A stretch of 64,000 bases of DNA from Bispira polyomma (taxonomy: Eukaryota). A program made the position numbers and the translations under genes. Positions 1,299 to 52,200 of this stretch are shown here, in pieces; position 1 is the stretch's first letter; each line of letters begins with the position of its first letter. The DNA lies in the NCBI GenBank assembly GCA_965649765.1, contig OZ287748.1, positions 75,330,001-75,394,000 of the forward strand, read 5' to 3'. The notes under the pieces were generated by a model. It was not told the origin of the DNA, ran no database searches, and saw only the letters and a list, made by a program, of their open reading frames with translations.

Positions 1299-4221
1299 TC
1301 AACTGAAACTTGAAACTGTATATACTACACCTGTAGAGCTAACCACGCTAGTCATTAATAAATACATATCCGAAATTTCTTTTACTATGTTGCTTAAAAC
1401 TACAATGCTATTAAATGTAATGATATTGCCAACCTTCCCTGGACCACAGGGAACTTTGGGAGATAGTGCAGGAAAATACATCAAATAACTTCACAATGGG
1501 TTGTTGTTACGTATCAGGTTGCGTTTAGTTTCGGTCCCATAGTCTGTGATGACAATAAATTGAACAGAACAGCCTTCATAAAGGCTTATTATTAGTGGCC
1601 ATTGAAGATCTGTAGTATTAAATGCTACAGTCCAGAAAAGGCAACTATATGTTCAATTTTGAAAGTAGAAAGCACATTAGTTTAAACTATATGAGTTTTA
1701 GTTGAAGCTGCTGCTTTCAGTGGATCATCTGACAACCCTTACATGAGTCCATAGGAGCACTAACATGCTACAGAATGAATCACCTATTTCTTCCTGAGAT
1801 TTAATTGACAAATTATCATTATTTGTATCATATTGTTTACAAATACGTCATTGTACAGTTGGGTTGTTGGTAAGGCAGCATCAAACTCTGAGTTAAGGAT
1901 TCTCTTACGAGTGTGGAACAGTTTATTTTTGTTGTCCTGAGTGTAGAGTTTTATAGGTATGCAGATAAAAGTGGCAACACACAGTTACCCACCTCTACAG
2001 GCATGCTTTTCAATCATGGTCCTCGTGTGTGAACGTTTGGCATTTGGCACAGGACTTGCTGAAGGACATCGGTTTTTGCAAAGGAGAACAACTTGAACAA
2101 CTACCCTGCTTTGTACTAGAGAACTAAACATTTTGATGCAACAGAAAACGCTTTGAAAGCTACATTTCAACATACCTAGAAGATAGAGAACAAGAGCAGT
2201 GTTTTAGCAGTTCTGATAAATATTTATATATCTGGACTGTTTTGTTAAGTGACCATATTGTGCCTGGATTTTGAATTTCATCCAGACACGCTCATACCGG
2301 TGATGCAGCACTTTAGCCAGAGTACCATTATGTTGCTGTTTGGTCTTATTAAGGTGCTTTTAGTTATCTATGGAGCATACTTAATCAAGCAATAAAAAGT
2401 TCTGGACAACATTTTTACAATTTATGCTCCTTCACCAACGCTATTTCATTTTTTCTGTCCATTGCCAGAGTCTGTACATCAGCAATGGTCTTCATCAAGC
2501 ACAATGTAAAAATATATAAGTACAATAAAAAATCTAACCTCCTCAGCAGTGTAGGGTGTGAATCTAGGCCCGAGTGTATATACATTCGCATTGCAATAAT
2601 CATAACCAACTAACTAAATTGGTTCTTATAGTGGTCAACTGCGGACAAAGTTATTGGGGAAGGGTAGTCAGTAATAAATTTGTCAACTTAAACTGGCATG
2701 CTTTATTTTAACTTTTAAGCCCAAGGTGGAAAATTTTAGGGTCAATTAGGACAGTGGAACGAATTAATTAAGAGGTCAACTGGGAGATTATACTTAATCC
2801 ACAGGGCAGCACTGACCTTACTAGTCCCCAAGCGCTACTTTGCACATTTGGTATCATGCTGCTGCCTCTATAAATATGCAAAATATCATCACCAAGATTT
2901 ACAAAACATTTTCATGAAAAAAGTTATAATTTCTTTTTCTACTTATATTTGGTTTACAAATTAAAAATGGCATTCTCATAGATTACTGTAACAGCAGATA
3001 TTTCCAATAGAAGTTGATTTGAGCTATTTTAGCGAATGTGCTAGAATAATCATACATAATAATACCTAGTGACAATTTAAAGGCATTACTGAAGAAGTGG
3101 TAATGGTTAATTAAGAACTAAAAATTGTAAATTAGTTCAACTTTTTTCAAACTAAAACGTGCACAGTATTTGTCAGTGGTTGCCATCAGACCGATTTAAT
3201 GCTACGTGTAGAGCCTTAACATATTTTGAAATAAAACTCAATACTTAATATGTTAACTTAATATAAACCTTTCAAGACGTTTCAATAGTAATTTGTTTTA
3301 ATTTGAAATGGGTTATCACCATTTGACTTCTGTGTTCCTTTTAATTTAACTTAAGATTACCAAACCTTTGCTGTTCATTTTGGCTTCCTTGCACTTCAGA
3401 GATTCCCATTATAGACGCAGCCTCATTATTAGCCACAAAAACTGTCACTCACACTAATTATACTGTTCCCTAAAGCAGCTTTGGTATAAAAATAACAAGC
3501 AAATAAAGCATCAGGCTTTTAATAAACCACCAAATTTGCAAGTGCTGGCAATGGAACACTATTATCATAGAGAGTGAAGGCATTTCAGGGATATTATCCA
3601 GCCAGCAGGAAATTAGTTGTCTGTATTTATAGGTTAATAAGAGTCTAAAAAGTTCATCGAGATTCTTACTGGGCCAACAAGTAGTAAACTAGTTGTCTGT
3701 ATGTAAAGGTGAATAGAGGTCTAAAAGGTATTTTTTGGGAACACCTGTGGTATGTTGATTTGTAGGACAAAGTTGCAAAACTTACAAAGTTGCAAAAGTT
3801 ACAAAGTTATGTCTCTATTCTGAAAGGTGAAAATATTATTAAGTATGTTGTTATAATTTAAAATAACTACATATGCTACCTAAAGCAAAAGGTTAATATC
3901 ATTTTAGCAATGGGTAATCAATAGCATTATTTTGTGCTTGTGTGTTTGTACAATAAAAAACATATGAGGTCTGTCATTTGTTGAATATATTCATAAGAAT
4001 AACTTCCACTGGGGCCTAGTAGGTGATTAACTCGCCACGGGACTGCTGAGGACCTTAGTTTGATCCCAGCGAGGGGCCCCCAGGTACAGCGAGAAACATA
4101 GTGGCTTGGAAGATTGACTAAAGCACTTTGGGAAAGTTGATAATTGGTCATCCTCTGCTATGGCTTTACAGAATTTAATAATTCGGTGTTTATCTTATAA
4201 GTTGAAGTAACATGCAGAAAC

Positions 4222-6879: not shown

Positions 6880-8620
6880 AAACAAACAACTGACACAACA
6901 ATTGCAACAGTATTTTACTTAACCTTATTAGTACCATTCATCAATATAAAAGGGAGCTGTAGAAATTTAAAGGTGTCCTTGTTTATTACTATGCCTAAAA
7001 AAATGCTGCTTTGTTGTGATATCAAAAAAAATCAGACATCACTTGTCACTGGATACTGCTTTTACTGTGGCTAGTTCCCTTGTAAGTAGCCGCCTTGAAT
7101 ATTACAATTCCCTTTGGTTTAGATTTAAAATGCCTCACATAAATAGGTTACAGTCCATATGGAACTATCTGTGCGGAGTAATTTGTGTCTGGGTATTCAT
7201 ACTGATGTCTCTTCATACCTCAAAATTCTTCTTGGCTTCGCATTCATTATCAAAAACTTTCAAAGCTGTTGTCTCTCAACAGCTCTTCTACCCTGCTACT
7301 CGACTTTTCTTTAGTAACCTCATAAGAGGAAAGATACTTTCTGTTTCCTTTTTTTAAACCCACCAAGAGGGCAGGATTGAGAGATTTCTCAATCGTCATG
7401 GAACACAAGTCTCTTAGTTGAGCTTAGATCACCAGAAACACTTTGTGGATTTAGGGGATAACTGAAACTGTATCTTGTTTACCGCCTTAGTTCACTCCCC
7501 CATGCACTCTCACACCATTCCTTTGGACCTGCCTATGTTTTTAGACTAGGTTGATTGATTCTGTTCTAGTGCTTCTAAAGAAGACTCACATTAACAAGGT
7601 TCATTATAATGCAAAATACGATACAATTCATCAGAGAGAAACCTATACCTGTAAATCGTCCTTTTTACATTTCCAGGGATCGAGTCTGCAAAGGTCACAT
7701 TGGTTTTATATTATGCTGTGTGGTCCATTGAGTACTGTACTGGATTGTTTAGGGTTTTTGAAATGAAATAAAACATCTTCTGACACCATATTGTTTTGTT
7801 TTTTTTTGGTTTTTTTTTGGTAAGCCCCCAAAATAAGATAAAACCCAGTCAGAATACCAAGTAAACAACATTATTCTAGATTTAGACACTAAATATTTCC
7901 CACCACTACTTAAATCACACCTTGTTGCTATTATGGAAGCTAAAGCACCGACAAGCACTTATTAGAATAAATTCACAGACAATTTTCTGTTGTCACTGAA
8001 GGTGTTTTAAGTGTAGTTTACTCTGCCATCACCAGTAATAACAAACAACACTCTAATATCTATTACCATAAATATTAGAGGTTTTGGATGTCCTATATGC
8101 AATGTCTATGTCACTCTATGTGGAAGTAAATTCACAAACAATGACTTTGTGCAACAGTTTGAAAGTCTTTCTTAGTTATTAGTTAATTATCTGGTTGCTG
8201 TGTGTCCGAGGGATTTACAAAGGCCCTGTAAACACAAAAATATTATGCTGAAACTACTACAGATTTTCAAATATATGCGAGCATGAGCAAAGTAAAGGTG
8301 TTTGTTACTAAATAAGTGAGTAAAAAAACCTTTGAGCTGCACAATAAGATCAACTGTCTAACATGGACGCCTAAGGTTGTGGAGCAGAAGCCTGGCATGA
8401 CACACTGTACGTTGGTTTGGTTTTAGAATCAGGATAAGGGCTTATCATTGGTTGTCTTCAGTTTAGTTTTTTCCCAGTTGGGAAAAAATATTGGCACAAT
8501 TTCTAAACTATCTCAAAGTGAATTCATGTTTTGTGTCCAAAATAGTTTTTAAGCTATTGTAGTGGTATAACAGGGATTCAAATACAATACTTTTTTCTCA
8601 AAATGCAAATGCAATGTATG
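6880..8620 (+). repeat. Segmental duplication block B (paralog of B' at ~9360-11280)
   Basis: Shared strings acttaaccttattag (6917 / 9396), gagtctg.aaaggtcacattggtt (7682 / 9561), ttattagaataaattcacagac (7959 / 9867), ggcacaatttc.aaactatctcaa (8493 / 11187). Confidence 0.88.
7016..7625 (+). mobile_element. L2 LINE 3' fragment (decayed)
   Basis: KIRHHLSLDTAFTVASSLVSSRLEYYNSL matches the L2 ORF2 C-terminal motif (LVSSRLDYCNSL); absent from paralog B'. Confidence 0.8.
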
Positions 8621-20537: not shown

Positions 20538-22850
20538 TATTCCATACCCCTTGTGTAGGTAAACAGGGTGCGGGGGTGGGATTTTTTATTAAGAAAAACT
20601 ATGAATGTCGATTAGTTGCTACACCAAGTTTTACATCTTTCGAACTCATCCTTGTCTCTGCTGACTGGAAAAACCACTGTTTAAATTTTGCAACAGTTTA
20701 TCGGCCTCCTGGCTCAAATCTCACTACATTTTTCGAAGAATTCATGTCTTTTGTTGGGTTTACTTGCTCGTTACCCTCTACTACTGTATTCTGTGGGAAT
20801 TTTAATATTCACATAGACACCGCATGGCGCCGAAACAAAACTACTACAAATAGATCTAGACTATGCCAATCACCTGGTGCAACAACACTATAAATGACTC
20901 AAAACATGCCTACTATGCCAACATGATATCACAAAGTGAGGGTGACCCGAAGAAACTTTGGCAAAAACTAAATAGCACCCTCCACTGTAAAAAACAGACT
21001 ATACTACCCGAAAATTGCTATAGCAACTCACTGGCAAACATTTTTAGTACTTTTTTCACTGATAAAATTACCAGAATCCGTTACGGTTTTATATTAGCCG
21101 CCCCAAATGCTCCTTTACCAACAGCTCAACTAACCATCTTCGACTGTTTCTCCACAGTAACTGTTGATGAAGTCAGGAAAATTATACTGGCATCACCTGT
21201 AAAATCTTGCTTGCTAGATCCGTGGCCCACATTCCTTGTTAAGGAATGTACTGACATTTTATTGCTCTCAATCACAAAGCTTATCAACCTCTCGTTGGTA
21301 AATGGCGTCTTTCCAGATGATTTTAAAAAGGCCATTGTCACTCCTTTAATAAAAAAAGCCTTCTCTTCCAAAGGCTGACTTGAAAAATTACCGTCCTGTC
21401 TCAGACCTTTGCTATATCTCTAAGTTGGTAGAACGTGCGGTTGCCTTACAGATCAAACAACATGTTGACGTCAGCAATCTGTCCAATAAGTATCAGTCAG
21501 CGTACAAAAGTGGTCATTCTACTGAGACTGCACTTCTCTGCATCAAAAATGATGTTCATACATCTTTATCCAAAGGTATTCCTACTGCCTTAGTACTGCT
21601 GGATCTGTCAGCAGCCTTTGATACTATTGATCACAAAGTTCTTCTTGAGTGCCTATCGTCTTGGTTCGGTATCAGCGGTATGGCGCTTAAGTGGTTCACG
21701 ACATATTTGTCTGATAGATTCCAATCAGTCAAAATTGGCAATATCTTATCCGACCCAACATGGTTAAAATTTGGTGTTCCCCAAGGCTCCGTCCTGGGTC
21801 CCATTTTGTTCTCCATGTACACCACTCCACTCAGCAAGATTATTACTGCATACAAAAACATAAACTTTCACTTCTATGCTGATGATACCCAACTGTACAT
21901 CCACCTTACACCTGACTCTGCTCAGGCAGCTTTCACTTCCTTACAGAACTGCCTTGTTGATGTACAACACTGGATGGCAGCAAATAAACTCAAGCTGAAC
22001 CCTGAGAAGACTGAGTTTATTTTGTTTGGCTCCAAGTCGCAACGGGAAAAATTGTCCAGCTGTTTTCCACTTGACATTCTTGGCAGCAGGTTTTTTCCAG
22101 CTGACAAAGTACGAAACCTGGGGGTGGTGTTCGACTCTGAATTCTCCTTCTCTAACCATGTCGCATCGGTGTGTAGATCATGTTTTGTTGGCCTCCGTGA
22201 TTTCAGGCGGATTCGACGTTATCTTTCCAAATCCACTGCAATCACTGTTGCCAATGCTTTGGTCAGCAGCAGGCTTGATTACTGCAACTCTCTGTTCCGT
22301 TCCTTATCTCGTAGTGATCTCAGACGCCTACAGAATATCCAACACTCATTGGCACGTATTGTGACCAAAACTTCTAAATTTTCCCACATTACTCCTGTAC
22401 TCAAGTCACTGCACTGGCTCCCAATAAAATATTGTGTTGCTTTCAAAACAGCAACAATAATATATAAATTTCTAAATTCTGGATTACCCACTTATTTTAG
22501 CCCCCATCTATCAAAATATACATGCTCAGTTAGGACAAGGCACAGTAACCATGATAAATTATACCTTAACATTCCCACTTTCGACCCTCGCATCCACAAA
22601 TCCAAAGTTCAGTTCAATCACTGCCTAGCTCATGATGGCCCCCTCATTTGGAACAGCCTACCTGATCCTGTTCGCCTGGCTCAAACTTTCTCCTCTTTCA
22701 GGAGTAAGCTGAAGGCTTATCTTTTTGAACAGGCTTTTCCACCTTAGCCGTCGCAACCATTTACGGTAGTCTCCCTGGTTACAACTTCCATCCGCCCACT
22801 ATTTTTGATTTTCGATTAATGTTTTGGGTTTGTTGCGCCTTAGAATTTGT
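20538..22850 (+). mobile_element. L2-clade LINE, internally deleted endonuclease, near-intact RT
   Basis: APE fragment (GVGFF, VYRPP, GNFNIH) joined by deletion near 20820; homopolymer frameshift near 21355; ORF 21380-22747 with NYRPVS, LDLSAAFDTIDH, GVPQGSVLGP, YADD, SRLDYCNS, LHWLP; 3' UTR to ~22850. Confidence 0.95.
21380..22747 (+). CDS. L2 ORF2 reverse transcriptase domain (455 aa open segment of a disrupted ORF)
   Basis: Uninterrupted non-LTR RT motifs including YADD; not a complete ORF2. Confidence 0.85.
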   Translation: MKNYRPVSDLCYISKLVERAVALQIKQHVDVSNLSNKYQSAYKSGHSTETALLCIKNDVHTSLSKGIPTALVLLDLSAAFDTIDHKVLLECLSSWFGISGMALKWFTTYLSDRFQSVKIGNILSDPTWLKFGVPQGSVLGPILFSMYTTPLSKIITAYKNINFHFYADDTQLYIHLTPDSAQAAFTSLQNCLVDVQHWMAANKLKLNPEKTEFILFGSKSQREKLSSCFPLDILGSRFFPADKVRNLGVVFDSEFSFSNHVASVCRSCFVGLRDFRRIRRYLSKSTAITVANALVSSRLDYCNSLFRSLSRSDLRRLQNIQHSLARIVTKTSKFSHITPVLKSLHWLPIKYCVAFKTATIIYKFLNSGLPTYFSPHLSKYTCSVRTRHSNHDKLYLNIPTFDPRIHKSKVQFNHCLAHDGPLIWNSLPDPVRLAQTFSSFRSKLKAYLFEQAFPP

Positions 22851-33796: not shown

Positions 33797-34741
33797 CTAG
33801 GAAGGTAAGGAAGAAGACAGCTGTTTTCGAAAGGTGTCAGCCACCTGATGGCCAGCATCAACAGTGTCAGTGACGTACCTCCACACGCAGTCCGACGTCC
33901 AAGTGCTAAGTTTTTGTATGTTCTGAATGCTAACGTTACGGTTAAATGCGAAAGTGGTACCTGAACGACGGAAAGTGTGGAAGGTAAGTCCAGAATCTTG
34001 TAATTGTAATCTGGTAAGGATATTTTTGAAATGCACTCGAACCTTGGAATCAGCCAGGGGAGTCCATTGGGCTTTAGTTTTAATTTGGAAAAGGGGAGAA
34101 TTTGGTCCAGAAGGGGTGAGTGCCAAAATATCTTCTAAAGCACGCACAGGGCACAATGGAGAGTGTACCAATCTAGGGACAGTAATGAGTTTAATTTGTT
34201 TATTGTTTTGCATTGTTTTGGACCATTTTATGAGAAGTACTGCGTTGTGACGATGAATCATGACGTCAGCTTTTGCCAAATGTTTTAAGGCAGAAAATTG
34301 GTTAACAGAATGTGGAACCAAATTTGATAATCTAAGGAAAGAGAAATAACTAAGCAAGTAAAGGGCTTTGAAGACAAAGCCCATATATGTGGTATGACAC
34401 ATTTGAATGATTTTTCCCAAGGTTGGAATGTCAATTTTTTTTTCAACTTACCATGGAGAGGCGCAGCCATCTGCACTGCTTTCTGGTAGTATGCAATACA
34501 GGGGTCAATAAATGCATGAATATTTACATTGTGAATTATTGACTTAGCTTTAATTGTAACAACTCTAGAAATCACAAGAGGTCAAACACAGTCACCTGAT
34601 TTAACTGCATGTCCATGAAGGCAGCATAGGCCCGAAAGACTGTATACATTGCATTATAGGATCTTGCAGTGGATCTGCAGAAAGCCAGGTGTAGTTTTTC
34701 TGTTGCCTTTTTATATAATAGTTGTTGTACTGGGTTTTTGT
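33797..34741 (-). pseudogene. Tyrosine recombinase of element 2
   Basis: Three frames join (34572-34790, 34285-34575, 33797-34420); R-K-HxxR-W-Y catalytic set recognisable. Confidence 0.9.
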
Positions 34742-34786
34742 CTGAAAAAATAAGAACACTACCAGAAGCATTGTGTGACACAGTTA

Positions 34787-37240
34787 TCATATGTGCACAT
34801 TAAGTAACAGATGTTTCTCAGTCACTGGACACCATTGGACGTCACCTGCAAGACTATTTAATCGATTAATGTCCTGTGCAGAGTTGATCCATCTGGACAG
34901 CAAGTCAGCTACAGTATTGTTTTAACCTAGGATATGAATCTTTCAATTCAACATCAAAGTGGCTAGCCACCATGAAAATGTTTCTGGAACATAGGGCTAA
35001 GTCAGAATTGCGCATTCTGCCATGAGTAATAACACTAACCACCGCCTGGTTGTCACATTTTAGGACGATTTTTTGTCCTTTCCAGAGATGAGCCCATAAC
35101 CTTAATGCTAGTAGAATGTTCAACATTTCCAGGAAGGCTATGTTGTGATGATGCATATTTACAGGCAGAGGCAGTGTATAAACCTGTTTCCCATAAACCC
35201 ACCCATTCCTTTTAGGCATGCGTCCAACTCTAAAGTGGCACTCACAGGTTTATGATAAAAGAAAGACAAGCCATTATACTTTTTCAAAAATGACCTGAAC
35301 CAAGTCAAGTCTTGCCGAAATTCAAAAGAAATTTTGAATGATTTTTTGTTATGGTTACTACTAAGAAGCTGGAGCATGCGGTTAAGGAAGAACCTGGAGT
35401 ATTTCACACATTTTGATATGTATAAAAGAGAACCCAGCAAACACTGGAGCTCACTTTTTGTACAGTACTTTTTACTCGCCCACTCATCACACATAACTTG
35501 TATATTTTCCAGCTTTTCGGCCGGTATCGAGGTGGTAAAGTCTACTGTGTCTATGTCAATTCCTAAACAGGTGACCCGAGTTGTTGGAGGGACTAGTTTT
35601 TTCTGGCTCAAAGTAAGACCTAGTTCTGCCAGAATACTTTGCAGGCGATAATAGGTTTTGTATATTTTTGTGGCAGTAGAACAGCATGATAGATCGTCGA
35701 TATTGTTCAATATATGGTGACCTTCACCCTTCATTATGAACCGGATACTATCTGAAATTCGCTAAAATATTGCCAAGCCATGCTTGTAGCCGAAGGGGAG
35801 GGAGCCGTCCACATAGTAACCATCCCAATAAAGTCCCAATAAATTGACATCCTTAGGGTCCATGGTCACATGCCTAAAGGCGCGACTGATGTCCGCTTTA
35901 AAGATCAGAGAACCCCTCCCCCGGCTATAACTTGATTTGTTATAGTGTCAATCGATGGATATGTGAATATAAAATCGCTGTTCAAATACGGGATACTGCA
36001 GCATTAACCGAATGACCTTCTAGCCAGCTGAGATCAATTATAACTCAACGGTTAGACGAGCTGGATTTATTTCTGGTCATAAATGGGAAAGTATGTAACT
36101 TGATGTCAGGAGGTGTGGCAAAAGGGCCATACATAGCACCCAACTTGCATTCCTAGTGGCTCACTCATTCTGGGTATTGTACAGCTGAGGAGTGATTGTT
36201 ACGTTCTGATTTAAATTCGTGTACGTCATCACAATCAAGGGGGAATCCAAACTTGATTAACAAAGGGAGTTCCCAATCCCAGTAACCTTGCAAGTATTCC
36301 GCCCATACATTGGCATTAAGCGGAGTAATAACAGGTAACTGAAGGCCCCTATAATTAAGGCGACCATCCAGCACAAGACACTGGTGTAGAGTCAAAGCAT
36401 GTTCAGGTAGCTTATCAGCTGAGTTATCACTAATAGGGGAGTCCCACTGTGTCAATGGAATAAACCCAAACTTGCCCTCATTCTGCACATCCCACAAATT
36501 ATAAGTGCTATGTTGCTTAGCTTTGTTCAATTGTTGTATTTTGTCAGGGCGCTTATGCATGTCTAATGAATACTTGTCAACACAGTCAGTCAAGTTCAGT
36601 TTGCTTGTTTTGCGACCACCAGTCAACTTCTTTGCATTATCAGAACAAACACGACCCCCACACTTGTTGACCTTGCCAACACGGTTTATTGTTTCACTAG
36701 AGGCCAAAGGCTCTGCAGAAGTGACACTTTGAACACAGTTTTTCCCCACATCATCTACACAATGGCTTAACGCAGAAAACTTATTAAGGAGGAACAACTG
36801 AAAAACACCACTCCCCATTCCATTGTCCCCCCCCCCCCCCCGAGTTCACACCTTTTGTGACATAATTGAATGGTTATTGAGGTGCCCCCCTTGGGGGAGG
36901 CTTGATTGAAAAGTTGTTGTGTGTACTTCACACCGTTTTGTAACATTGATTTGTTCATTTTCGACACAACTAACTTGTTGGCAACTTTTTGTTTACACTT
37001 AACAGAGGGTTTTGGTCCCCTGCTATTTCTCCCAATGTCGCCCACCACAGGTCGGCTAGTGTGGACTCGAGAATTACCTTTTTTCACATCCACTACCACG
37101 TCCCACGTTTGTTACACATGAGATATTTAACATACAATTGATCACACAATTTAGAATCTTTAAAGTTAGAGTTGTACACCAATCTAGAATATATCACATC
37201 ATTTTGACGTTTAGGGTCCACTGCAGTACTGCAGTGGCCA
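34787..37240 (-). pseudogene. pol (RT + RNase H) of element 2
   Basis: NYRGLQLPV..LN..W..GFPLD, NHSSA, LGLTLSQKK..CLGIDIDT, LLGSLLYISKCV, RNase H motifs; several stops and frameshifts; ends ..LLLNVHI*. Confidence 0.9.
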
Positions 37241-37251
37241 CTCAGTTTTTT
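37218..37251 (-). promoter_or_regulatory. Putative -1 ribosomal frameshift signal (A_AAA_AAC + hairpin)
   Basis: Slippery AAAAAAC (37251-37245) in gag phase before TGA; 7-nt spacer; perfect palindrome CCACTGCAGTACTGCAGTGG (37218-37237); homologous cassette at 49831-49864. Confidence 0.65.
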
Positions 37252-38210
37252 ACTACTGATTTTTTAGTACATCACAGTTTTTGCAGCAGTGTTTAAACTA
37301 CTGTCCGGAAGTACGGTGGCTAGTGTTGAACTTACAAGTTCCTTCCCGGAAAAACCGACAGACAACGCCTTGAGATTTAAGTTGACTTTTTGGCTTGGAA
37401 TTGGACTTTGAAGCGCCTGAGTTATTTGTACTGTTTGGAATATGGCGTTGAGCGTGAGCTCTACAGACACGGTCTACTTTGTCGACGTCCATCCACTTAA
37501 GGTGGTGAAGTTCCATATTAGTAAGCAAAATAGCGTGAGACGCTTTGGCGGCTTCCCACGAGAAATCATGGGCGTCATCCATCAAATTGGCAAGATACTC
37601 AAGCATTGCCTCCCGTACTTTTGCTCCTGTATGCATCGAACAAATCCTAAAGTAAATTCCACTAGGGTTAAAGCATCGTATGTGGGTCTGGTTTTTTTCA
37701 CTTCCGACAGTACAAAATTCTGAGGCCGATCAACGCTTTTCTTAATAGGGGCCTCAGCACCACCACGCTGTGACTTTAATTTACCTCCGGTAAATTCATT
37801 GAGTTGTTGCAACTGCACTAAACGCTGGTCTACCTGGGCCTGTATTTGATCATTTAAGCGCCAAAAAATTTTGGGAAAGGAACCACGGTTTCTATTACTG
37901 GCTCAGATACTTTTGCAACATTAATACTGGATATAGAAGGGTTTGTACATGCCTTATTGGCACTGGGTAGACACAGCGCCGCCTCCGTGACTTGCAAACG
38001 TCGATCCATGCTCTTCATTTTTTTGTTCAACGCCTGGAGTTGTTGTAATATTTGTCCAGACACAGAATCAGACAAACCATTGGTAGAAGCAGGATCAACC
38101 GTGGTCACTTTCTCGGCAACGCTGTCCTCCAAGTAAAACCGACAACGCCTTCCAACAGGCCTTTCATGCTTGCCCGAACACCCATTACACTGATATTCCT
38201 TTTTAGGCAT
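37242..38210 (-). pseudogene. gag-like ORF1 of element 2
   Basis: N-terminal CNGCSGKHERPVGRRC, coiled-coil-like segment, GKLKSQRGG, YDALTLVEF..GF, YLANLMDDAHDFSW, C-terminal Cys/His motifs; ends AAA AAC TGA. Confidence 0.8.
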
Positions 38211-40273: not shown

Positions 40274-43087
40274 ATGCTTGCTCCCGTGACCGTAACAGCA
40301 GATATTTGAACAATAGGGACAGTGTGGTTTGTGGTTTTAATAACCTTAAAGTAAAAGACGAAGTTTGCAAACTTGCAACCAATAGTATAAATAGTAAATA
40401 TGTAAATGAATCATGTAAAAATGTTAATTGTAATAAGTTAATGGAAATATCTAGTTGCACCAAAAGTGAGACAAATAATGTAATGCAAAGCCCACACAGG
40501 CACTTAGCTATAAGTACGACTGTGACTTTATGTAGTGAGAGAAATAGAAATACTGGTATATTGAACCAGGCCACAAAGGGTAACGGGTTTCCTGGGGGCA
40601 CTGCTAGTACTAGCAAACCCACACAGAGTATCCAACAAAATACTTAAATACTCTCAAACATTTGGATTATCATGAGGGCTATGTTTACCATGGGATGTAC
40701 GACGAAACTGTACCAGGAAAAAAATCAAAAGGGGATAGGGATACATAATACTTGGGATAACAATTACAACTTAAAAAACAAGGATATACTTCGAGTATGT
40801 CAAGAGTCTGAAGGAAATAAAGTCAGGATTTCTACAGCCAACTGGGCGTTTTATATACCAGAAAAAGGATATAATATCCAGGTAAGTACGTCCAAGATTA
40901 TGGGCACAGGTTTTCAGGTTTTTATATGCAAGGGGATGGGCTGTGGGGCCTACAAGGCCACTACTATAGATGCGATGATCCCTCACCGGGTGAGATACAC
41001 ATTATCCACTCAGTAAATTCATTCCTGACTTTTATTCCTATGGTACCTAGAAGGGGTCATTATGTGACTAATGTAACTGATGAAAATTTGTACAAGGCCA
41101 AAGAGTCTTGGCTTGAATATAATAAATATGTATCATATATGAAACAGTACAATGTGAATTACACAGATTATATAACCAATGTGATTGACATATTGTTAAG
41201 TGAATGTTCTGATGTCTTACCCTCTCAGATAAAGAGAGATGTGGCTACAGGTATAGTTACACCGTGCGACCTCTTCATCGAAAAGCATGAACATGCTATA
41301 CAAAGCACTAAAGAAATTGCTACCATAGATAGGGACGTTAACTTACCCAACAAGACCAAAGGGTTTTTGGCATTATCTGACACCAAATTTAAATTTTGTG
41401 GACCCGACAGGGCTCCCATAAAAATTGATTCTATAGAAGACTAAATGACTAAATGGGCAAAAATCATCAGTGACACGAAATGTCCTAATTACAGAGAGGC
41501 AAGAATCCCTCTGCTTTCTGGACTTAACATCCCAGCATGGAAAAACGTACTTAAAGATTACCCAGATTGCTTTTACAAAATCTCAAATTCGGTTTCCCTC
41601 TCTCACTTCAAAACCCACAAATTTTAAGGAACTTTGAAACCACTAATCACCACTCTGCTCAGCAGTTTAAACTGCTATTGTTTAATATCTGGATAAGGAG
41701 AAAAAGTGTAGTGCAATGTTAGGCCCTGCTACTGATTCTTTAGATAAGGAAAGTTTCCACTGCCCTCCACTGTTAACCAGACCAAAAGACAGACAAAAGA
41801 CGAGTTATCTTAAACTTATCATATCCTAAAGGAAATTCCAGTAACGACAATGTTGACAAAGAACATTTTGACGGGGTACAATTCAAACTGTAATTCCCAA
41901 CAATCGACGATATAGTAGAGAAAATATGTAATACTAGGAACCAAAAATATGTAAACTAGATGTAGCACGCACTTTTAGAAACTTAAGGGTGGATCCAGCA
42001 GACGCTTTAAAACTGGACATTTGTTTTAAAGGCGGAAAATGTGTCAATCCGGCTGTTGCGTTCGGCTGGGTCCACGACTCGGCCATCCTTCATTGCTACT
42101 CTGACGTTGTAGCCCACTACATGGGCAAAATTGGACACACTGTTTTCTGTTACATCGACGATTACGTCGGTGTCTCCACTTCCGGTGAAGCGGACACAGC
42201 GTTTGATGAATTACATCAACTCGTTAGTGATTTAGGTGTTCCCTTGAATCTGAATAAAATCTCAAAGCCAAGCTCAAAGATAACTTGTCTAGGCATTGAT
42301 ATAGACATTGACAATGGCATTATAAGTATTACAGAGGAAAAAATCAGGGAAACATACCAACTCTGTCTAGACATACTGAACAAGAAATGGATTTCTAGAA
42401 CAAAATTCCAGTCTGTCCTTGGAAAACTTATATATACATAAATGTGTAAAACTTGCCAGAATTTTTAGCAATCGTTTACTCAGGGCTTTTAGAAATAACA
42501 GCCAAGCGAAGCGTTTTAAAGTAACAGAGGAAATGAAGGCAGGCTTGCTCTGGTTCAAAGGATGTTTACCTGCCTACAACGGCATTACCTTTATTAAACC
42601 TATGGACACGGCTTTGGAGAATGAAGTTTTCATAGACGCCTGCTTAACGGGCCTGGGGCAATATACATGAATCAAATATACGCGAACCCTCTGTATAACG
42701 TGTTCGGACGAGAACTTACCATAGTGCATATCGAAATGCTAAATATTTTGTTGGCTTTGAGAGTCTGGGGAGAGCAGTGGAGACATAGAAGGATAGTCAT
42801 AAATTGTGACAATATGACTGTCGTACTAGTAATAAGGTCAGACAAAACTAAGGACGAATTTTTATCACTCTGTTTAAGGAATATTTGGCTAATCGCATCA
42901 ATCTTTGATATTACTATTGAAATACAATACATAAGGGGCAAGGACAATATAATAGCAGATCTATTATCTTAATTATTTTCAGAAGAACCCCCCCAAGGGG
43001 GAACAAGTTAATATTCTAAGTGAAAATTGTATTTGGAGAAACATAACAATACAGGTTTTTAACCTAGATCTTACTGTGTAATTCCAG

Positions 43088-46254: not shown

Positions 46255-47481
46255 TTATCCACAAGGTGGTGACTTTTTCCTGTATCTTTTGTATCTGGTA
46301 CATATTAACACTCGGATAAGCTCCACACGGAACATCTTGGCACAGAGATTGTACAGGATAAAGTTAATAAAGTAGTTCAAATAATAGGGCACAGAAGTCA
46401 GATATTTAGCAGCAAACAGATGCCACTGGGGGTAGATGCCACTGAAGCCAATCAGTCCATAATATTGGGCAAACAACAACACCCATGTGATACAATATGG
46501 CAGGTTAAGGACCACAAACGTCATGGAGACAACTAAAAGTAATGTAGCCACATTATAGTCATTCTTCTTTCTGTACTGTATGGGTTTGTCGTTGCTAAAA
46601 CTGACTCTCCTCTGTATAAAGTGCTTCTGCTTGGTGTAGATTTTACTCAGTATGTAGACATTTAATGTACATATAACCATAATGGGGATGATTATAGATC
46701 CGAAGATTAATACTATCACCGTTAATATAAAGTAGATCCCGGCTCTGCCTGGCAGTACATCACATTCATTGCCATATGGTAAATCCACAATGCCCACGGT
46801 AAAGACAGTGAAGGAAGTGCACAGGAAACATAAAATCCCTGCAATGGCAATGACCTTTCTCACGTAAAAAGTACAGCTGAAGCCGGCTCTTTTAAGGGGA
46901 TGTATCACCCCGATAAATCTCTCCACCGTAAAGGTTGTCACCAACAGAGCTGACATAAGCCGACTGGTGTAGGACAAGTGGGTGATAAGCACACATACCA
47001 AATAGGAGTGCTTAACAATATCCAAACCAATGTGAGGATGCTTTAGGCAGTAATCAAACAAAACCGTCATTAGGGAAATGTTGTCGGACACACCCAGTGC
47101 AGCAAGGTACCATGATGTTGCACGCTTACGCATGCGCATGTTCAAGAAGACCGTGATTGATAGACTGTTGCATATCAGGCCTAGTGGAATAATCACCAAC
47201 AGAGAATAGAGCATAATATCCTGACTTAATGTGTAAACACCATTTACAGTTTCTTCCTGAGTTAAGGTACTGTAGTTTACTAATGTCCCGCTGAAGTTGT
47301 CAAAGTCATTATCCTTCCGTAGCTGCGCTCCAAACAATTCAAACCGGTTGTTTGCAACAAATGAGGAGGCGGTGAGATCCTGGTTGGGGTCCATTGTGGA
47401 AGAATTCCTCAGTTTGAGAGTGTTGTCCAGTTGGTCCAGGCTGAGACTTCTGGCGGTTGTGGTGTCATTCATTTTTGGCAT
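46255..47481 (-). CDS. Rhodopsin-family (class A) peptide GPCR, FMRFamide/sex-peptide-receptor-like group
   Basis: Intact ORF with seven hydrophobic segments, TM1 GLICN, TM2 LAALGVSD, TM3 TVERF, ECL2 Cys, TM6 FVVLNLPY, TM7 LNYFINFILY, N-glycosylation sites in N-terminus. Likely start ATG at 47481 (MPKMND), downstream of a pyrimidine tract + CAG acceptor at 47514-47512; the ORF track start is 47577. Confidence 0.92.
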   Translation of the reverse strand: MPKMNDTTTARSLSLDQLDNTLKLRNSSTMDPNQDLTASSFVANNRFELFGAQLRKDNDFDNFSGTLVNYSTLTQEETVNGVYTLSQDIMLYSLLVIIPLGLICNSLSITVFLNMRMRKRATSWYLAALGVSDNISLMTVLFDYCLKHPHIGLDIVKHSYLVCVLITHLSYTSRLMSALLVTTFTVERFIGVIHPLKRAGFSCTFYVRKVIAIAGILCFLCTSFTVFTVGIVDLPYGNECDVLPGRAGIYFILTVIVLIFGSIIIPIMVICTLNVYILSKIYTKQKHFIQRRVSFSNDKPIQYRKKNDYNVATLLLVVSMTFVVLNLPYCITWVLLFAQYYGLIGFSGIYPQWHLFAAKYLTSVPYYLNYFINFILYNLCAKMFRVELIRVLICTRYKRYRKKSPPCG

Positions 47482-49264
47482 CTGAGTTTTATACCGAATG
47501 GTGCTAGTCCTCTGATGAATAAAAGCAGTATGAGGAAAGTAAAATTTAGGAGTGGTGGTACAATTGTATGACAGCATCGATCATTATTTTTGCCTTGAAA
47601 TACTAAGAGTAAAGCTAGCCTTCTATAAAGACTACTTTAATATATAAAAATATCTGTTCGTCTTAGTTTTTCTGAATGATAGATGATACATATGATCACT
47701 GTCATAAATATAAAATCCAGTACAAATAGTTGATACATACATATTTTTTTAATAAAAATAAGTTTCACATAGTAAAGGTCACAATAAAATTCTGCAACAG
47801 TGTTGTCCCAGACAATAAGGGATAGGTGCTTCTAATCTAATTGTTTGATTACTGTCCATTGAAGGAAGGAAATACGACAATTTACTCAATGAGAAGCCTC
47901 TGCATTTTTCTGGGTGTTCAACCGGTCACAAGATAAACACAGACTGCAGTCATTGTTTGTCGAAGTAATGGAACTCTGTTTGCATACCATGGTCTGTGGA
48001 TTTGAACCATAAATTGTGTTATTTTGTAAAACTACTATTAATTAACAGTTATTGTGGGTTAAATTTTATCAAATAATATTTTAATGACAAAAAGTTCCCA
48101 TTAATATATGCGTTCACTATCATAGGTTTCTGGAATATATGATTTGCGAAGATTAGTTTTGTATAAATACAAAGACTTGGTGGAGAAATAGTTAAAGCAA
48201 ATTTTAGGATGGGCAAGTAGAGATTTTTTATAAAACTAACAAGAATATCTCTTAACTACAGACAGATTGAGGGACTGTTAAGTTGTGATATGTGAATCAA
48301 CAGTGCTGCCATTTTGCTGCTATTAACAGTAAGATGATGATGGCAGGTACTGTCTTTACAGCCGACCACTTTTTGTATCAAACTATACACATAAAATGTA
48401 CAAAAATCCTCACAGTAGTGCATAGTGAAGTTAAATATATTTAAACTTCAATAACAAGCTGAATATCAGTTAGACATATTGATGTGTAAAGCTGATTTAA
48501 AGTTAATGCCTGCCTCTAAATAGTTTCCTGTCTCATGCGTCTTAAAATCTGCTAAGCATGGAGATAAGCGCTATAAAAGTTAGATTAGATTAGTTGTCTC
48601 ATTTAGTGTTAACATCCACTAAACCAAAATGTTTGTTTCTGTGTGGTGTATTGTAATAATCTAGAATCAACAGTAAATCAATCTTAAAATCTGAAAATGT
48701 TAAAGCATTGACACTCTATTTAATAAATCATGTGGTTACTATCAGTCAGTATAAGTGTACACCCAACATTGCAAAACACACTGGAAGAAAATATAAAAGT
48801 TAAAAATAGGTTGTGAAATATAGTATTATTATAAATATTTTCTGATATTAAAACAAACAGTCAGTAATAAGTTCGCTTTGCTATTTTTCTCAGCATCACA
48901 TAATTTTGTGGACACTGCATATATTTGGACAAAGTGCATTTGTAGACTAATATATTTACTGTCCATACATTTGTGACAAAACAAAATAATAAGATAAAAT
49001 GAATAGTGAGCACCACTTTTGTCTGATATTTTTGCAGGAACATGTAAATAATTAGACAAGACCTTTCTTTAGCAATGGATACATACCATCGAGACAAATA
49101 TGACACATTGCAATAATGACAACGATTAAGAGGTTAGTCATTAAAGTGGGAAAATAATGGGGAAATAGATCATTCACCTAAAAAAACATACAGTAAGTAT
49201 ATTGACTAAAGTATAATAATTTGCTGTAGAGTGTGTACCTTGCATTTACTGGGTGTAGTTTACA

Positions 49265-52200
49265 ATGCAACGACAAGGTGCTGGCGATTTTAGTTCTGGT
49301 GTACCAGTCTTATATAGTCACAGTTGATTGTGGCCAGTATAAAGGGCGATGCAACATAAATCTTCCCGCCTTCTCGCAAAATGTTTATGATATGTGATTT
49401 CAGTAGACAGTTGATGTGTTTTATCTGTTGTATTTTAAGTGTTTTAGTACCCTATTTTAATCATACTCTCTTAAAATGCCGCGTAATAAAGTATATAGTT
49501 ATTTAATGTGTACGAAAAAGCATGAAAGGCCAATTGGCAACAGATGTGCATATAATAAGGATGTCTCATTTGAGGAATCCATCACCGACGCTGACTCGAG
49601 TGATGAAGCACAACAAACTTCAGCTTTTGATGGCAACCAGTAACCAGCAGTACTTCTCAGGGTGTAGGGGCACGGGGTATCAGTAAGGGGCAAATATGGC
49701 TAAGCAGGACTCAGCAAATTGCACATTTTTTCAGGATGGTATGTGTAAGTTCTCCAACAGTGAGGAAACGCCTATTTTAAACATGTGTTAAGGAGCCCAT
49801 GAAAGCAACACTTGCAGCTACAAAAACAGTAAAAAACTGAGGGGCCATTGTTACAATGCAGCGGGCGATAAAAAGTAAAAGAATTGAAGTATACAGTAGA
49901 AGTGTATATATGACAGACTTTCAAGCATTTCAGATGTTTGACAAGGCTGTCATTTCTCAAATGTGTAAATATAACAGGGGTAAACAGCTTCAGTATAGTT
50001 ATAGTAAAGACGTGAAGAAAGTATGGAGAAGTAGTAGAATCAATACACAGAGGTTTGAACAATACGAGGGAGGCAGTAAACCAAATGCCAACAATTAATA
50101 TTGTGGGAAAATTAGAAAAATGCAACATAAACAAGGGTTCAATTACCACATCTCACAAAAGCACCTGGGTTAAAAACCACGTAAGTGTCAACTTTCTATT
50201 GTTTAGGTTGAAGAGGGCGAAAACAATATCCAAACTCACAAGGCAGAATGCAGTGAGGGAGGGAAATCTATTATGAAAGGCCGGGTTGGCCGAAACAATA
50301 CAAAAGTAGAACTAAAAAATGTCAACAAGAAAGGGGCAAGTATTATGGCAAGTGTGGAAACACACAATAGATTAGATTACTCAACAGCCAATGTGCCTTA
50401 GTGTGGTCACTGATATGGGGGAGGGGTGTAATGAAACAACAAAGGAAACAAACATTGCAAGCGACAACCGAATTTGTTTCAAAACAAACACAAACGTGTC
50501 TGACATCAATATGAAAATCAATAACCCCAAGTGCAAAGACGTGTATTGCTCCAGCATAGACAATACAATACAACAACTATTAATGATAAATATGCCTTAG
50601 AACTTAAGCGAAAAATCAACAACCTTGAATTGCTGAATAAAGCTTCAAATGATAATACTTATTTTACTCCTCTGTCAAAACCTCTGCTGCAAAGTATGAG
50701 AAAGTAAATCCGGAAATTATTGCCTTGATGTGCTACAAATGCACATTGTAGACCTCAGTTGGCCTCTGGGCCAATCTAAAATGGGACTCCTATTATGAAG
50801 ACAGAGCACTTCCTTTCGGTTAACAAAACAGATCTTATATTTTCCAGAAAAGAAAGCATCCACAATTATGTTGACGATTATTTATGTATATCGTTACTCA
50901 GCAAAATAAACACAATTTACACTAGGGCTCACTATGAGCAGTAAAAAATTTATCGACCCTAGTACCAATGTTGTATGCTTGGACATTCTCATAAATACAG
51001 TAGACTTCCCCACTTTAATCATTGAAGACAAACTCAAAATAGTAAAACAAATGTGTCAAAATTGGTGAGACAATGACTATTGTAACAAACGAGAACTGCA
51101 GTCCCTACTTGGCTCATTAAAGTACATCTGTTCATTCAAACAGAATGCTACAATTGCTCAGAGATAATCATGATATGAAAATATTTTGCATATAACATGA
51201 CATTAAGATAAAATTAAAATGGTTTACTACATCCATGAAGCAATTTAATGGCGTTGCATTCTTTTCACACAAACCGGTTGATGCCCAGATCGAACTCGAC
51301 GCTTGCCTAACTTGTACGGGTGTCATATATATAGTCTATAAATTATCCATACAATATCAAATGTCTCAAGACAAGATTGCTTCCCTTTAAATGCTCAATA
51401 TACTGGTTGTTTTGAAATTATGGGCTAGAATATAGAAGGAAAAAGGGTAATTTTAAATTTGTGACAACCAAACCGTGGTCAGTATATTGGAGACTGGCCG
51501 CACTAAAGATCTGATTTTAGCCACATACACCAGAAATATTCATTCATATACTGGGTATAAAAATAAAGTCGCCGACCTGCTTTCCAGATGAGACAATACT
51601 AAAAATAATAACCAACTCTTAAGTGAATGGGGAGGGGGCTGTAACATGGCTCTCAACAAATGTGTCATTATTAAATATAGATAATCATCTATAGCATATA
51701 TAGTATTATTGTTATATATTCCAGGTGTAAACCCATTGGGCACACTGCTGACAAAAGCTGCTTGTAAACGGATGCACACTGCTTTTTGGCAGCAAAAGCC
51801 TATCATAGCATGTTTAGGCTCTTCCTCGATTTTGGCGTTTTCTTGGAATGGCCTGTTGCTCAGGTGAAAGTATTTCCATTGCTGTCTTATTTAGAGTTCT
51901 TAAATTTTAATAGTGTGTCTGCTTCCCAAATTGCCAATCATTTGTCGGCAGTTCAAGCCAAATGTATTTTGTTTCATATTAAAGTAGATGTATTATCTGA
52001 CCCAAGAATCTCTTATAGCAGAGCCTTGTCAATTACCAGACCCTCCATACCCAAAATTATGTTTGACATATCATTATTATTACCTTGGGTTAAAAGATTT
52101 GACTGTACCTACATGGGACAAGTCTGCAAAGTTTTATATTTGACAATTTTGTTCAGCTTTCTGAGGCTGTCAAATTTGTGTCTTTATTCTGTTGACAGTT

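Follow-up and report, generated by a model that had tools for sequence, protein, structure and literature searches.

The 64,000-nucleotide (nt) window analysed here (Bispira polyomma, GenBank assembly GCA_965649765.1, contig OZ287748.1, positions 75,330,001 to 75,394,000 of the forward strand) carries retrotransposon copies that are numbered below as elements 1 to 4. Element 2 occupies positions 38210 to 33797 of the minus strand as a single copy with a Gag-like open reading frame (ORF), an ORF for reverse transcriptase (RT) together with RNase H (pol), and a tyrosine recombinase (YR). Comparison with relatives in the genome (1.04 Gb in 75 contigs) and in metagenome contigs indicated that such Ngaro-like YR retrotransposons probably contain an intron of about 3 kb, whose removal would join the N-terminal part of Gag to the recombinase as a Gag(N)-YR fusion. 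The first-pass annotation of the window had proposed this intron, and the comparative sequence evidence now supports both of its splice sites and the agreement of their phases.

In the proposed scheme, one transcript of a Ngaro-like element would give three proteins. Gag would be translated from the unspliced RNA, and a -1 frameshift at A AAA AAC would yield Gag-RT/RNase H. Some of the RNA would be spliced from a phase-1 donor (..AG/GTAAN), located where the N-terminal Gag module ends, to a phase-1 acceptor, a pyrimidine tract with YAG, at the first YR codon, which would take out about 3 kb. The spliced mRNA would use the gag ATG and encode a fusion in which about 138 Gag residues, with a zinc-knuckle-like motif and two long helices, precede the complete recombinase. 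The signals would be used by the spliceosome, and the Gag module shared by the products may bring the recombinase to Gag/RNA assemblies.

The donor lies in a glycine codon of gag that is conserved at the nucleotide level. The codons GGA GGT AAA occur without any synonymous change in eight families of the genome, with adjoining codons varying freely, and the donor codon is GGT followed by A (G/GTA) in all of about 19 lineages, from these eight families through to the metagenome relatives; G/GTA is retained in loci L035-L042, L044, L049 and L066. A gag alignment of 150 codons covered seven lineages of this genome and two of another species. Of its columns, about 46 hold a fully conserved residue with degenerate codons, and the donor GGT is the only one of them written with a single codon. 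The base before the donor G is A in 9/9 of these lineages, and the following codon begins with A. The other species has R-G-R in place of G-G-K and nonetheless retains GAG/GTA. More distant lineages encode (T/S/Q/H/E/N)-G-(N/K) as NNN G/GT AAN, with donors such as ACA G/GT AAT, TCA G/GT AAC, CAA G/GT AAT, CAA G/GT AAG, CAT G/GT AAT, GAA G/GT AAA, AAT G/GT AAC and TCA G/GT AAT. Because GGT makes up 40% of the glycine codons in these gags, its presence in all of about 19 lineages is far from chance, even allowing for shared descent. The donor is also the sole phase-1 GT with a purine at +3 that is conserved through gag.

The position of the donor can be compared with the architecture of Gag. In intact relatives, exon 1 encodes about 138 amino acids (aa) with an N-terminal CCHC-like knuckle and two long helices. 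For L032, a copy from a young and undamaged family, a structure model of the 138 homologous aa gave a small knuckle and then helices at 45-78 and 110-137, ending at the donor; the terminal helix was also given as 117-137 in a structure model of the exon 1 product. In distant lineages a variable low-complexity linker follows the N-terminal Gag module. Judging from these models, the exon ends appear to coincide with domain ends, exon 1 stopping with the last Gag helix and exon 2 comprising the whole YR. A complex prediction for two copies of Gag residues 45-138 scored 0.02, which counts neither for nor against self-association.

The acceptor was compared across 12 or more lineages of this genome and, in addition, L033-L035, L037 and L041. 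At undamaged junctions of every lineage, the first conserved YR codon begins with G and the preceding codon is N-Y-A. The residues encoded at this point vary (S, P, L, A, V, T or I before; D, E, A or G after), and the pyrimidine-rich stretch upstream is variable in length and unconserved in translation. A wider set was obtained by scanning JGI metagenome contigs with a YR alignment, which gave 44 loci at 26-39% identity, 30 of them with enough upstream sequence. Of these 30 distant loci, 24 had a phase-1 YAG within eight codons of the start of YR homology, preceded by a 20-nt stretch with 12 or more pyrimidines; the same signal in the other two phases was present in 4/30 and 2/30. Among 5,729 control windows from the same loci, 9.1% were positive (binomial P ~3.5e-20, the loci not being all independent). 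On these counts, there is a genuine, phase-specific nucleotide signal at the acceptor. Donor and acceptor agree in phase: in all lineages the donor comes after base 1 of a gag codon, and the acceptor G stands in place of the first base of a YR codon.

A start codon for the recombinase is missing in most lineages. From the last stop to the AG, no in-frame ATG is present in L025, L018, L033 and L037 or in about 17 of 27 distant loci, and in such lineages the first methionine falls within the conserved N-terminal YR domain. Consequently, an upstream exon must supply an ATG in the right phase.

In the window, the proposed parts of element 2 and the homologous acceptors are as follows.

37785-38210, minus strand: proposed exon 1, from the gag ATG (38210) to the first base of the donor glycine codon; broken here by a 2-nt insertion near 37863.
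37779-37788, minus strand: putative donor motif GGAG/GTAAAT (codons GGA G/GT AAA T), phase 1, with the cut between 37785 and 37784 and the GT at 37784-37783.
34742-37784, minus strand: proposed intron of 3,043 nt, with a predicted join of 37785 to 34741.
37216-37251, minus strand: predicted gag/pol -1 frameshift cassette, consisting of A AAA AAC, the stop TGA and then a G+C-rich hairpin; within the proposed intron.
34784-34789, minus strand: end of pol, with tandem stops TGA TAA after the conserved ...LLLNVHI; sister copies have TGA TGA.
34742-34783, minus strand: spacer with the pyrimidine tract and putative acceptor, ...gtgttcttattttttcAG; AG at 34743-34742.
33797-34741, minus strand: proposed exon 2, the whole YR including its stop, with an N-terminal core-binding-like part and a catalytic R..HxxR..Y part.
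43070-43087, plus strand: homologous acceptor of element 3, ctgtgtaattccAG/GT TCC ACT; AG at 43086-87.
51705-51724, plus strand: homologous acceptor of element 4, attgttatatattccAG/GT GTA AAC CCA; AG at 51723-24.

The proposed intron of element 2 thus holds two thirds of gag (the C-terminal part), then the -1 frameshift site and RT/RNase H, and finally the pol stops with the pyrimidine-rich spacer; its acceptor reads ttattttttcAG/AC AAA AAC CCA on the minus strand (AG at 34743-34742). The splice-site positions in the first-pass annotation (AG at 34743-34742 and GT at 37784-37783, both minus; AGs at 43086-87, 51723-24 and 4-5) were all correct. YR homology was found to begin right after each of the four AGs (34743-34742, 43086-87, 51723-24 and 4-5), as had been claimed, and elements 3 and 4 do lack an in-frame ATG between the last stop and the AG.

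Element 2 itself was less apt as the source of a fusion protein: its splice signals are present, but its reading frames are broken by insertions and deletions relative to the sister copy L002. The two copies share 92.7% identity with 22 such differences, which marks element 2 as a decayed copy. Two extra nucleotides near 37863, between the gag ATG (38210) and the putative donor codon, put that codon out of frame with the ATG. One T or A has been lost from the pyrimidine tract at about 34749, and exon 2 is interrupted by the loss of 46 nt at 34556, within the YR, and by further insertions and deletions. Element 2 is a dead copy in which the splice signals are preserved and from which the fusion product cannot be made.

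The type of the element was established from its relatives. The element 2 family has about ten copies in the genome at 87-90% identity, together with many related families at 67-73%, and the window copy shares 69-90% DNA identity with relatives that bear RT/RNase H. The undamaged layout is seen in the young family of L031 and L032 (98.7% mutual identity): a gag of 331 aa, a 58-nt overlap, a pol of 878 aa and then the YR, with a single TAG closing pol and the YR following in the same frame. The L032 pol (878 aa) matched the Pfam family RVT_1 above the cut-off (E 3.7e-8) and gave weak matches to RVT_3 and RT_RNaseH; after RNase H there was no match to a Pfam methyltransferase family, and pol ends about 35 residues past the RNase H-like match. 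The YR gave a weak Phage_integrase match below the cut-off (E 0.0027); relatives carry PF00589 and PF13495, and the catalytic residues R179, H297, R301 and Y331 are invariant in the alignment. In L032, an A repeat of 165 nt stands at the 5' end and recurs downstream of the YR (100% identical), and a B repeat of 307 nt closely follows the YR and recurs at the 3' end (99.7% identical); the B1/A2 and A2/B2 spacers of about 370 and 570 nt are looser than the textbook split-direct-repeat layout. The family is a Ngaro-like YR retrotransposon of the DIRS order, with gag, RT/RNase H, YR, split direct repeats and no methyltransferase. Upstream of the RT domain, residues 1 to about 480 of the L032 pol (L032:2803-5436:-) matched no Pfam family.

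The slippery heptamer A AAA AAC stands directly before the gag stop also in L032 (~2605-2650, reverse-complement numbering) and in L035 (~7490-7510). A G+C-rich hairpin follows the heptamer and stop in L032 and in the window copy, and pol is open in the -1 frame. Such an arrangement has the features expected of a classical -1 frameshift cassette for gag and pol. In L031 (G000:C12:38416000-38424000, minus), gag runs on into pol as a single open frame of 1,239 codons, so that a frameshift is not needed; L032 has two frames.

Rather than by splicing, the recombinase might be made by readthrough of the pol stop as part of a Gag-Pol-YR polyprotein, the pyrimidine tract and AG being incidental. Some relatives have the layout that such a route would need. 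Pol and YR share a frame in L002, L018, L020, L023-L026, L031, L032, L033, L034, L041 and L061, and in all genome families and in L033, L034, L041 and L061 the spacer between them, which holds no further stop, varies in 3-nt steps (19, 31, 34, 40, 46 or 79 nt; 16 nt in L041). These lengths are always 1 mod 3, so that the stop-to-AG distances, read as multiples of 3 in the first-pass annotation, do not keep that value in undamaged relatives. However, relatives in the element 2 family have two consecutive stops (TGA TGA) between pol and YR where other genome families have one. The stop may be TAA, TAG or TGA, in a context without known leakiness, and no stable RNA fold was found after it in six lineages (z -0.81 to +1.45). 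In L035, all three ORFs are open and the YR lies in another frame than pol; in L037, the spacer of 227 nt has stops in all frames, and L037, L044, L046 and L050 all have long spacers with several stops. Of 22 loci in the wide set, with spacers of up to 318 nt, 6 have pol and YR in a common frame and 16 do not, as expected by chance, and readthrough therefore cannot be the general route. It also leaves the invariant N-Y-A G and the invariant gag GGT unexplained. For these reasons, readthrough is an improbable explanation of the whole pattern, and it could be a second, lineage-specific route.

A further explanation accepts the acceptor and gives it a different partner, either a trans spliced leader or a donor that lies elsewhere, for example in the 5' untranslated region, so that the YR would not be fused to Gag. 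The acceptor is indeed better supported than the donor, with more lineages and a control test behind it, and spliced leaders are used by some marine invertebrates. Nevertheless, with exon 2 devoid of an ATG in most lineages, such a partner would have to provide one in phase, and gag already contains a G/GT that shares phase 1 with the acceptor and, among the phase-1 GTs of gag with a purine at +3, is alone in being conserved. A partner outside gag is thus considered unlikely.

The recombinase might also be produced free, by termination and reinitiation or by non-AUG or internal initiation at the pol stop. In L035, an ATG ATG overlaps the TGA stop in the YR frame, L034 has TAA ATG, and some lineages have an in-frame ATG in the spacer. 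This ATG is not conserved, however, being missing in the distant loci counted above and in several genome families. The ATGA stop/start overlap of element 2, noted in the first-pass annotation as a possible YR start, shares the YR frame in the damaged window copy alone, because of the 1-nt deletion at 34749; in other copies of the family the tract is one base longer, and the ATG opens a different frame that meets a stop after about 24 codons. More broadly, frameshifting or reinitiation at the RNase H stop, which the same annotation had kept as an alternative, is ruled out in many lineages by stops or by a change of frame between pol and YR. Initiation at the pol stop would leave the nucleotide-level conservation of both splice signals unexplained and is very unlikely. 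Finally, the GT and AG might be chance features without function, given that GGT is the commonest glycine codon (40%) and that T-rich spacers are common after ORFs, but the invariance of the donor in about 19 lineages and the phase bias of the acceptor (24 against 4 and 2 of 30, with a control rate of 9%) make coincidence scarcely credible.

Two other candidates were examined and rejected. A short local intron removing the pol stop lacks a donor: towards the end of pol no phase-1 GT is conserved, and L032 is devoid of any GT in that part. Locus L012 was considered as a retrotransposed spliced copy, and its deletion (L012:4000-4110) joins the RT region just after YIDD to a point in the YR 15 nt past the acceptor AG; it proved to be a plain deletion via ACAA microhomology, without GT.

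Several observations weigh against the spliced Gag(N)-YR fusion. First, the conservation that the first-pass annotation proposed to check was found for the donor G/GTA and the YAG acceptor across families, but not at donor position +5, which is mostly A rather than G and gives a donor of moderate strength; a moderate donor would fit an element that needs most of its RNA unspliced. Second, YTNAY-like words (for example, TTTAC in L002 and L032) can be seen by eye upstream of the AG and are too common to count towards a branch point, which would be expected 18-40 nt from it. Third, a splice-only model does not predict the shared pol-YR frame and the 3-nt-step spacers of this clade; low-level readthrough to Gag-Pol-YR may coexist there with splicing, or the shared frame may be inertia. 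Fourth, no Gag(N)-YR fusion protein was found in two large protein libraries, which consist mostly of ORF calls on DNA. The queries were the YR, Gag residues 1-140 and a Gag-N profile against 1.84 billion representatives, and they returned plain Gag or YR ORF calls only (longest Gag match, 354 aa); because of the make-up of the libraries, this search is uninformative. Fifth, no joint at the predicted place, L032 2720/5957, was present in three sequencing runs of one study, which consist of contigs of unknown kind with DNA-like even coverage. These contigs covered the whole element, and their only joints were short-sided and of low depth; such material gives no reading on the RNA.

The proposal may extend beyond this genome. 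For animal Ngaro-like elements in general, the chances are about even that the YR is never a free ORF product and is made only as Gag(N)-YR from a spliced subgenomic mRNA, its zinc-knuckle/helical module loading the YR into Gag/RNA assemblies. This would be a retrovirus-style partial splicing that arose independently.

Partial splicing is a standard device of retroviruses and of some long terminal repeat (LTR) elements, and in avian retroviruses env gains the first gag codons by splicing. The closest analogue of the proposed intron is the SD' RNA (SDARE) of murine leukemia virus (MLV), in whose product P50 the C-terminal 116 aa of integrase follow MA, p12 and a 110-aa portion of CA (PMC10496198). 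In both cases, a donor inside gag is (or would be) joined to an acceptor far downstream, and an N-terminal part of Gag, translated from the gag ATG, is placed in frame with an integration enzyme as a third product. However, MLV fuses only a C-terminal piece of its integrase, as an accessory regulator, and obtains full integrase from Gag-Pol, whereas here a complete recombinase would be fused and would depend mainly or wholly on the splice for its expression. The enzymes also differ, being a DDE integrase in MLV and a tyrosine recombinase here.

The spliced gag mRNAs of copia/Ty1-copia and BARE and the env-type mRNAs of retroviruses also keep the intron in the genomic RNA and set the ratio of products by partial splicing (PMC5580714, PMC3735527). 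These are likewise retroelements with partial splicing; in contrast to the proposed intron, those cases yield Env or extra Gag and not an integration enzyme, and none belongs to a tyrosine recombinase element.

Compared to Ngaro itself (DIRS order; Goodwin and Poulter 2004, as cited in PMC9210276 and PMC3783388), the present family has the same gene order of gag, RT/RNase H and YR, no methyltransferase, and split direct repeats A1...B1...A2...B2. The Ngaro YR ORF is described as in frame with, or shifted against, RT-RH (PMC3783388). The DIRS/Ngaro literature searched, unlike the present proposal, treats the YR as a separate ORF, often overlapping or frame-shifted. In the literature searched, which left the original descriptions outside its scope so that a prior mention is possible, there was no mention of splicing in DIRS/Ngaro elements.

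The same literature leaves the expression route of the recombinase in DIRS/Ngaro elements unexplained, with a third ORF that often has no start and may stand in any frame relative to pol. If true, expression only as a fusion would account for these long-noted start-less and variably framed YR ORFs of the DIRS order. A real intron would provide a concrete route of expression and add a new Gag(N)-YR product to the replication model, and it would place partial splicing as an expression device outside LTR elements and retroviruses. The annotation of such elements would change as well, because ORF finders miss the fusion. The signals can also serve as markers, namely a phase-1 G/GTAA following the second helix of Gag and, where the YR starts, a phase-1 YAG.

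Two further observations concern sequences beside the elements described. In the metagenome contigs of L037 (YR at 529-1497, gag at 2026-3090), L043 and L049, a gag starts about 0.5-0.9 kb after the YR; these contigs represent either elements in tandem or assembled circular or permuted forms. In the window, long ORFs of 455 and 440 aa lie outside the YR elements at 21380-22747 (plus strand) and 46255-47577 (minus strand), and they probably belong to other mobile elements.

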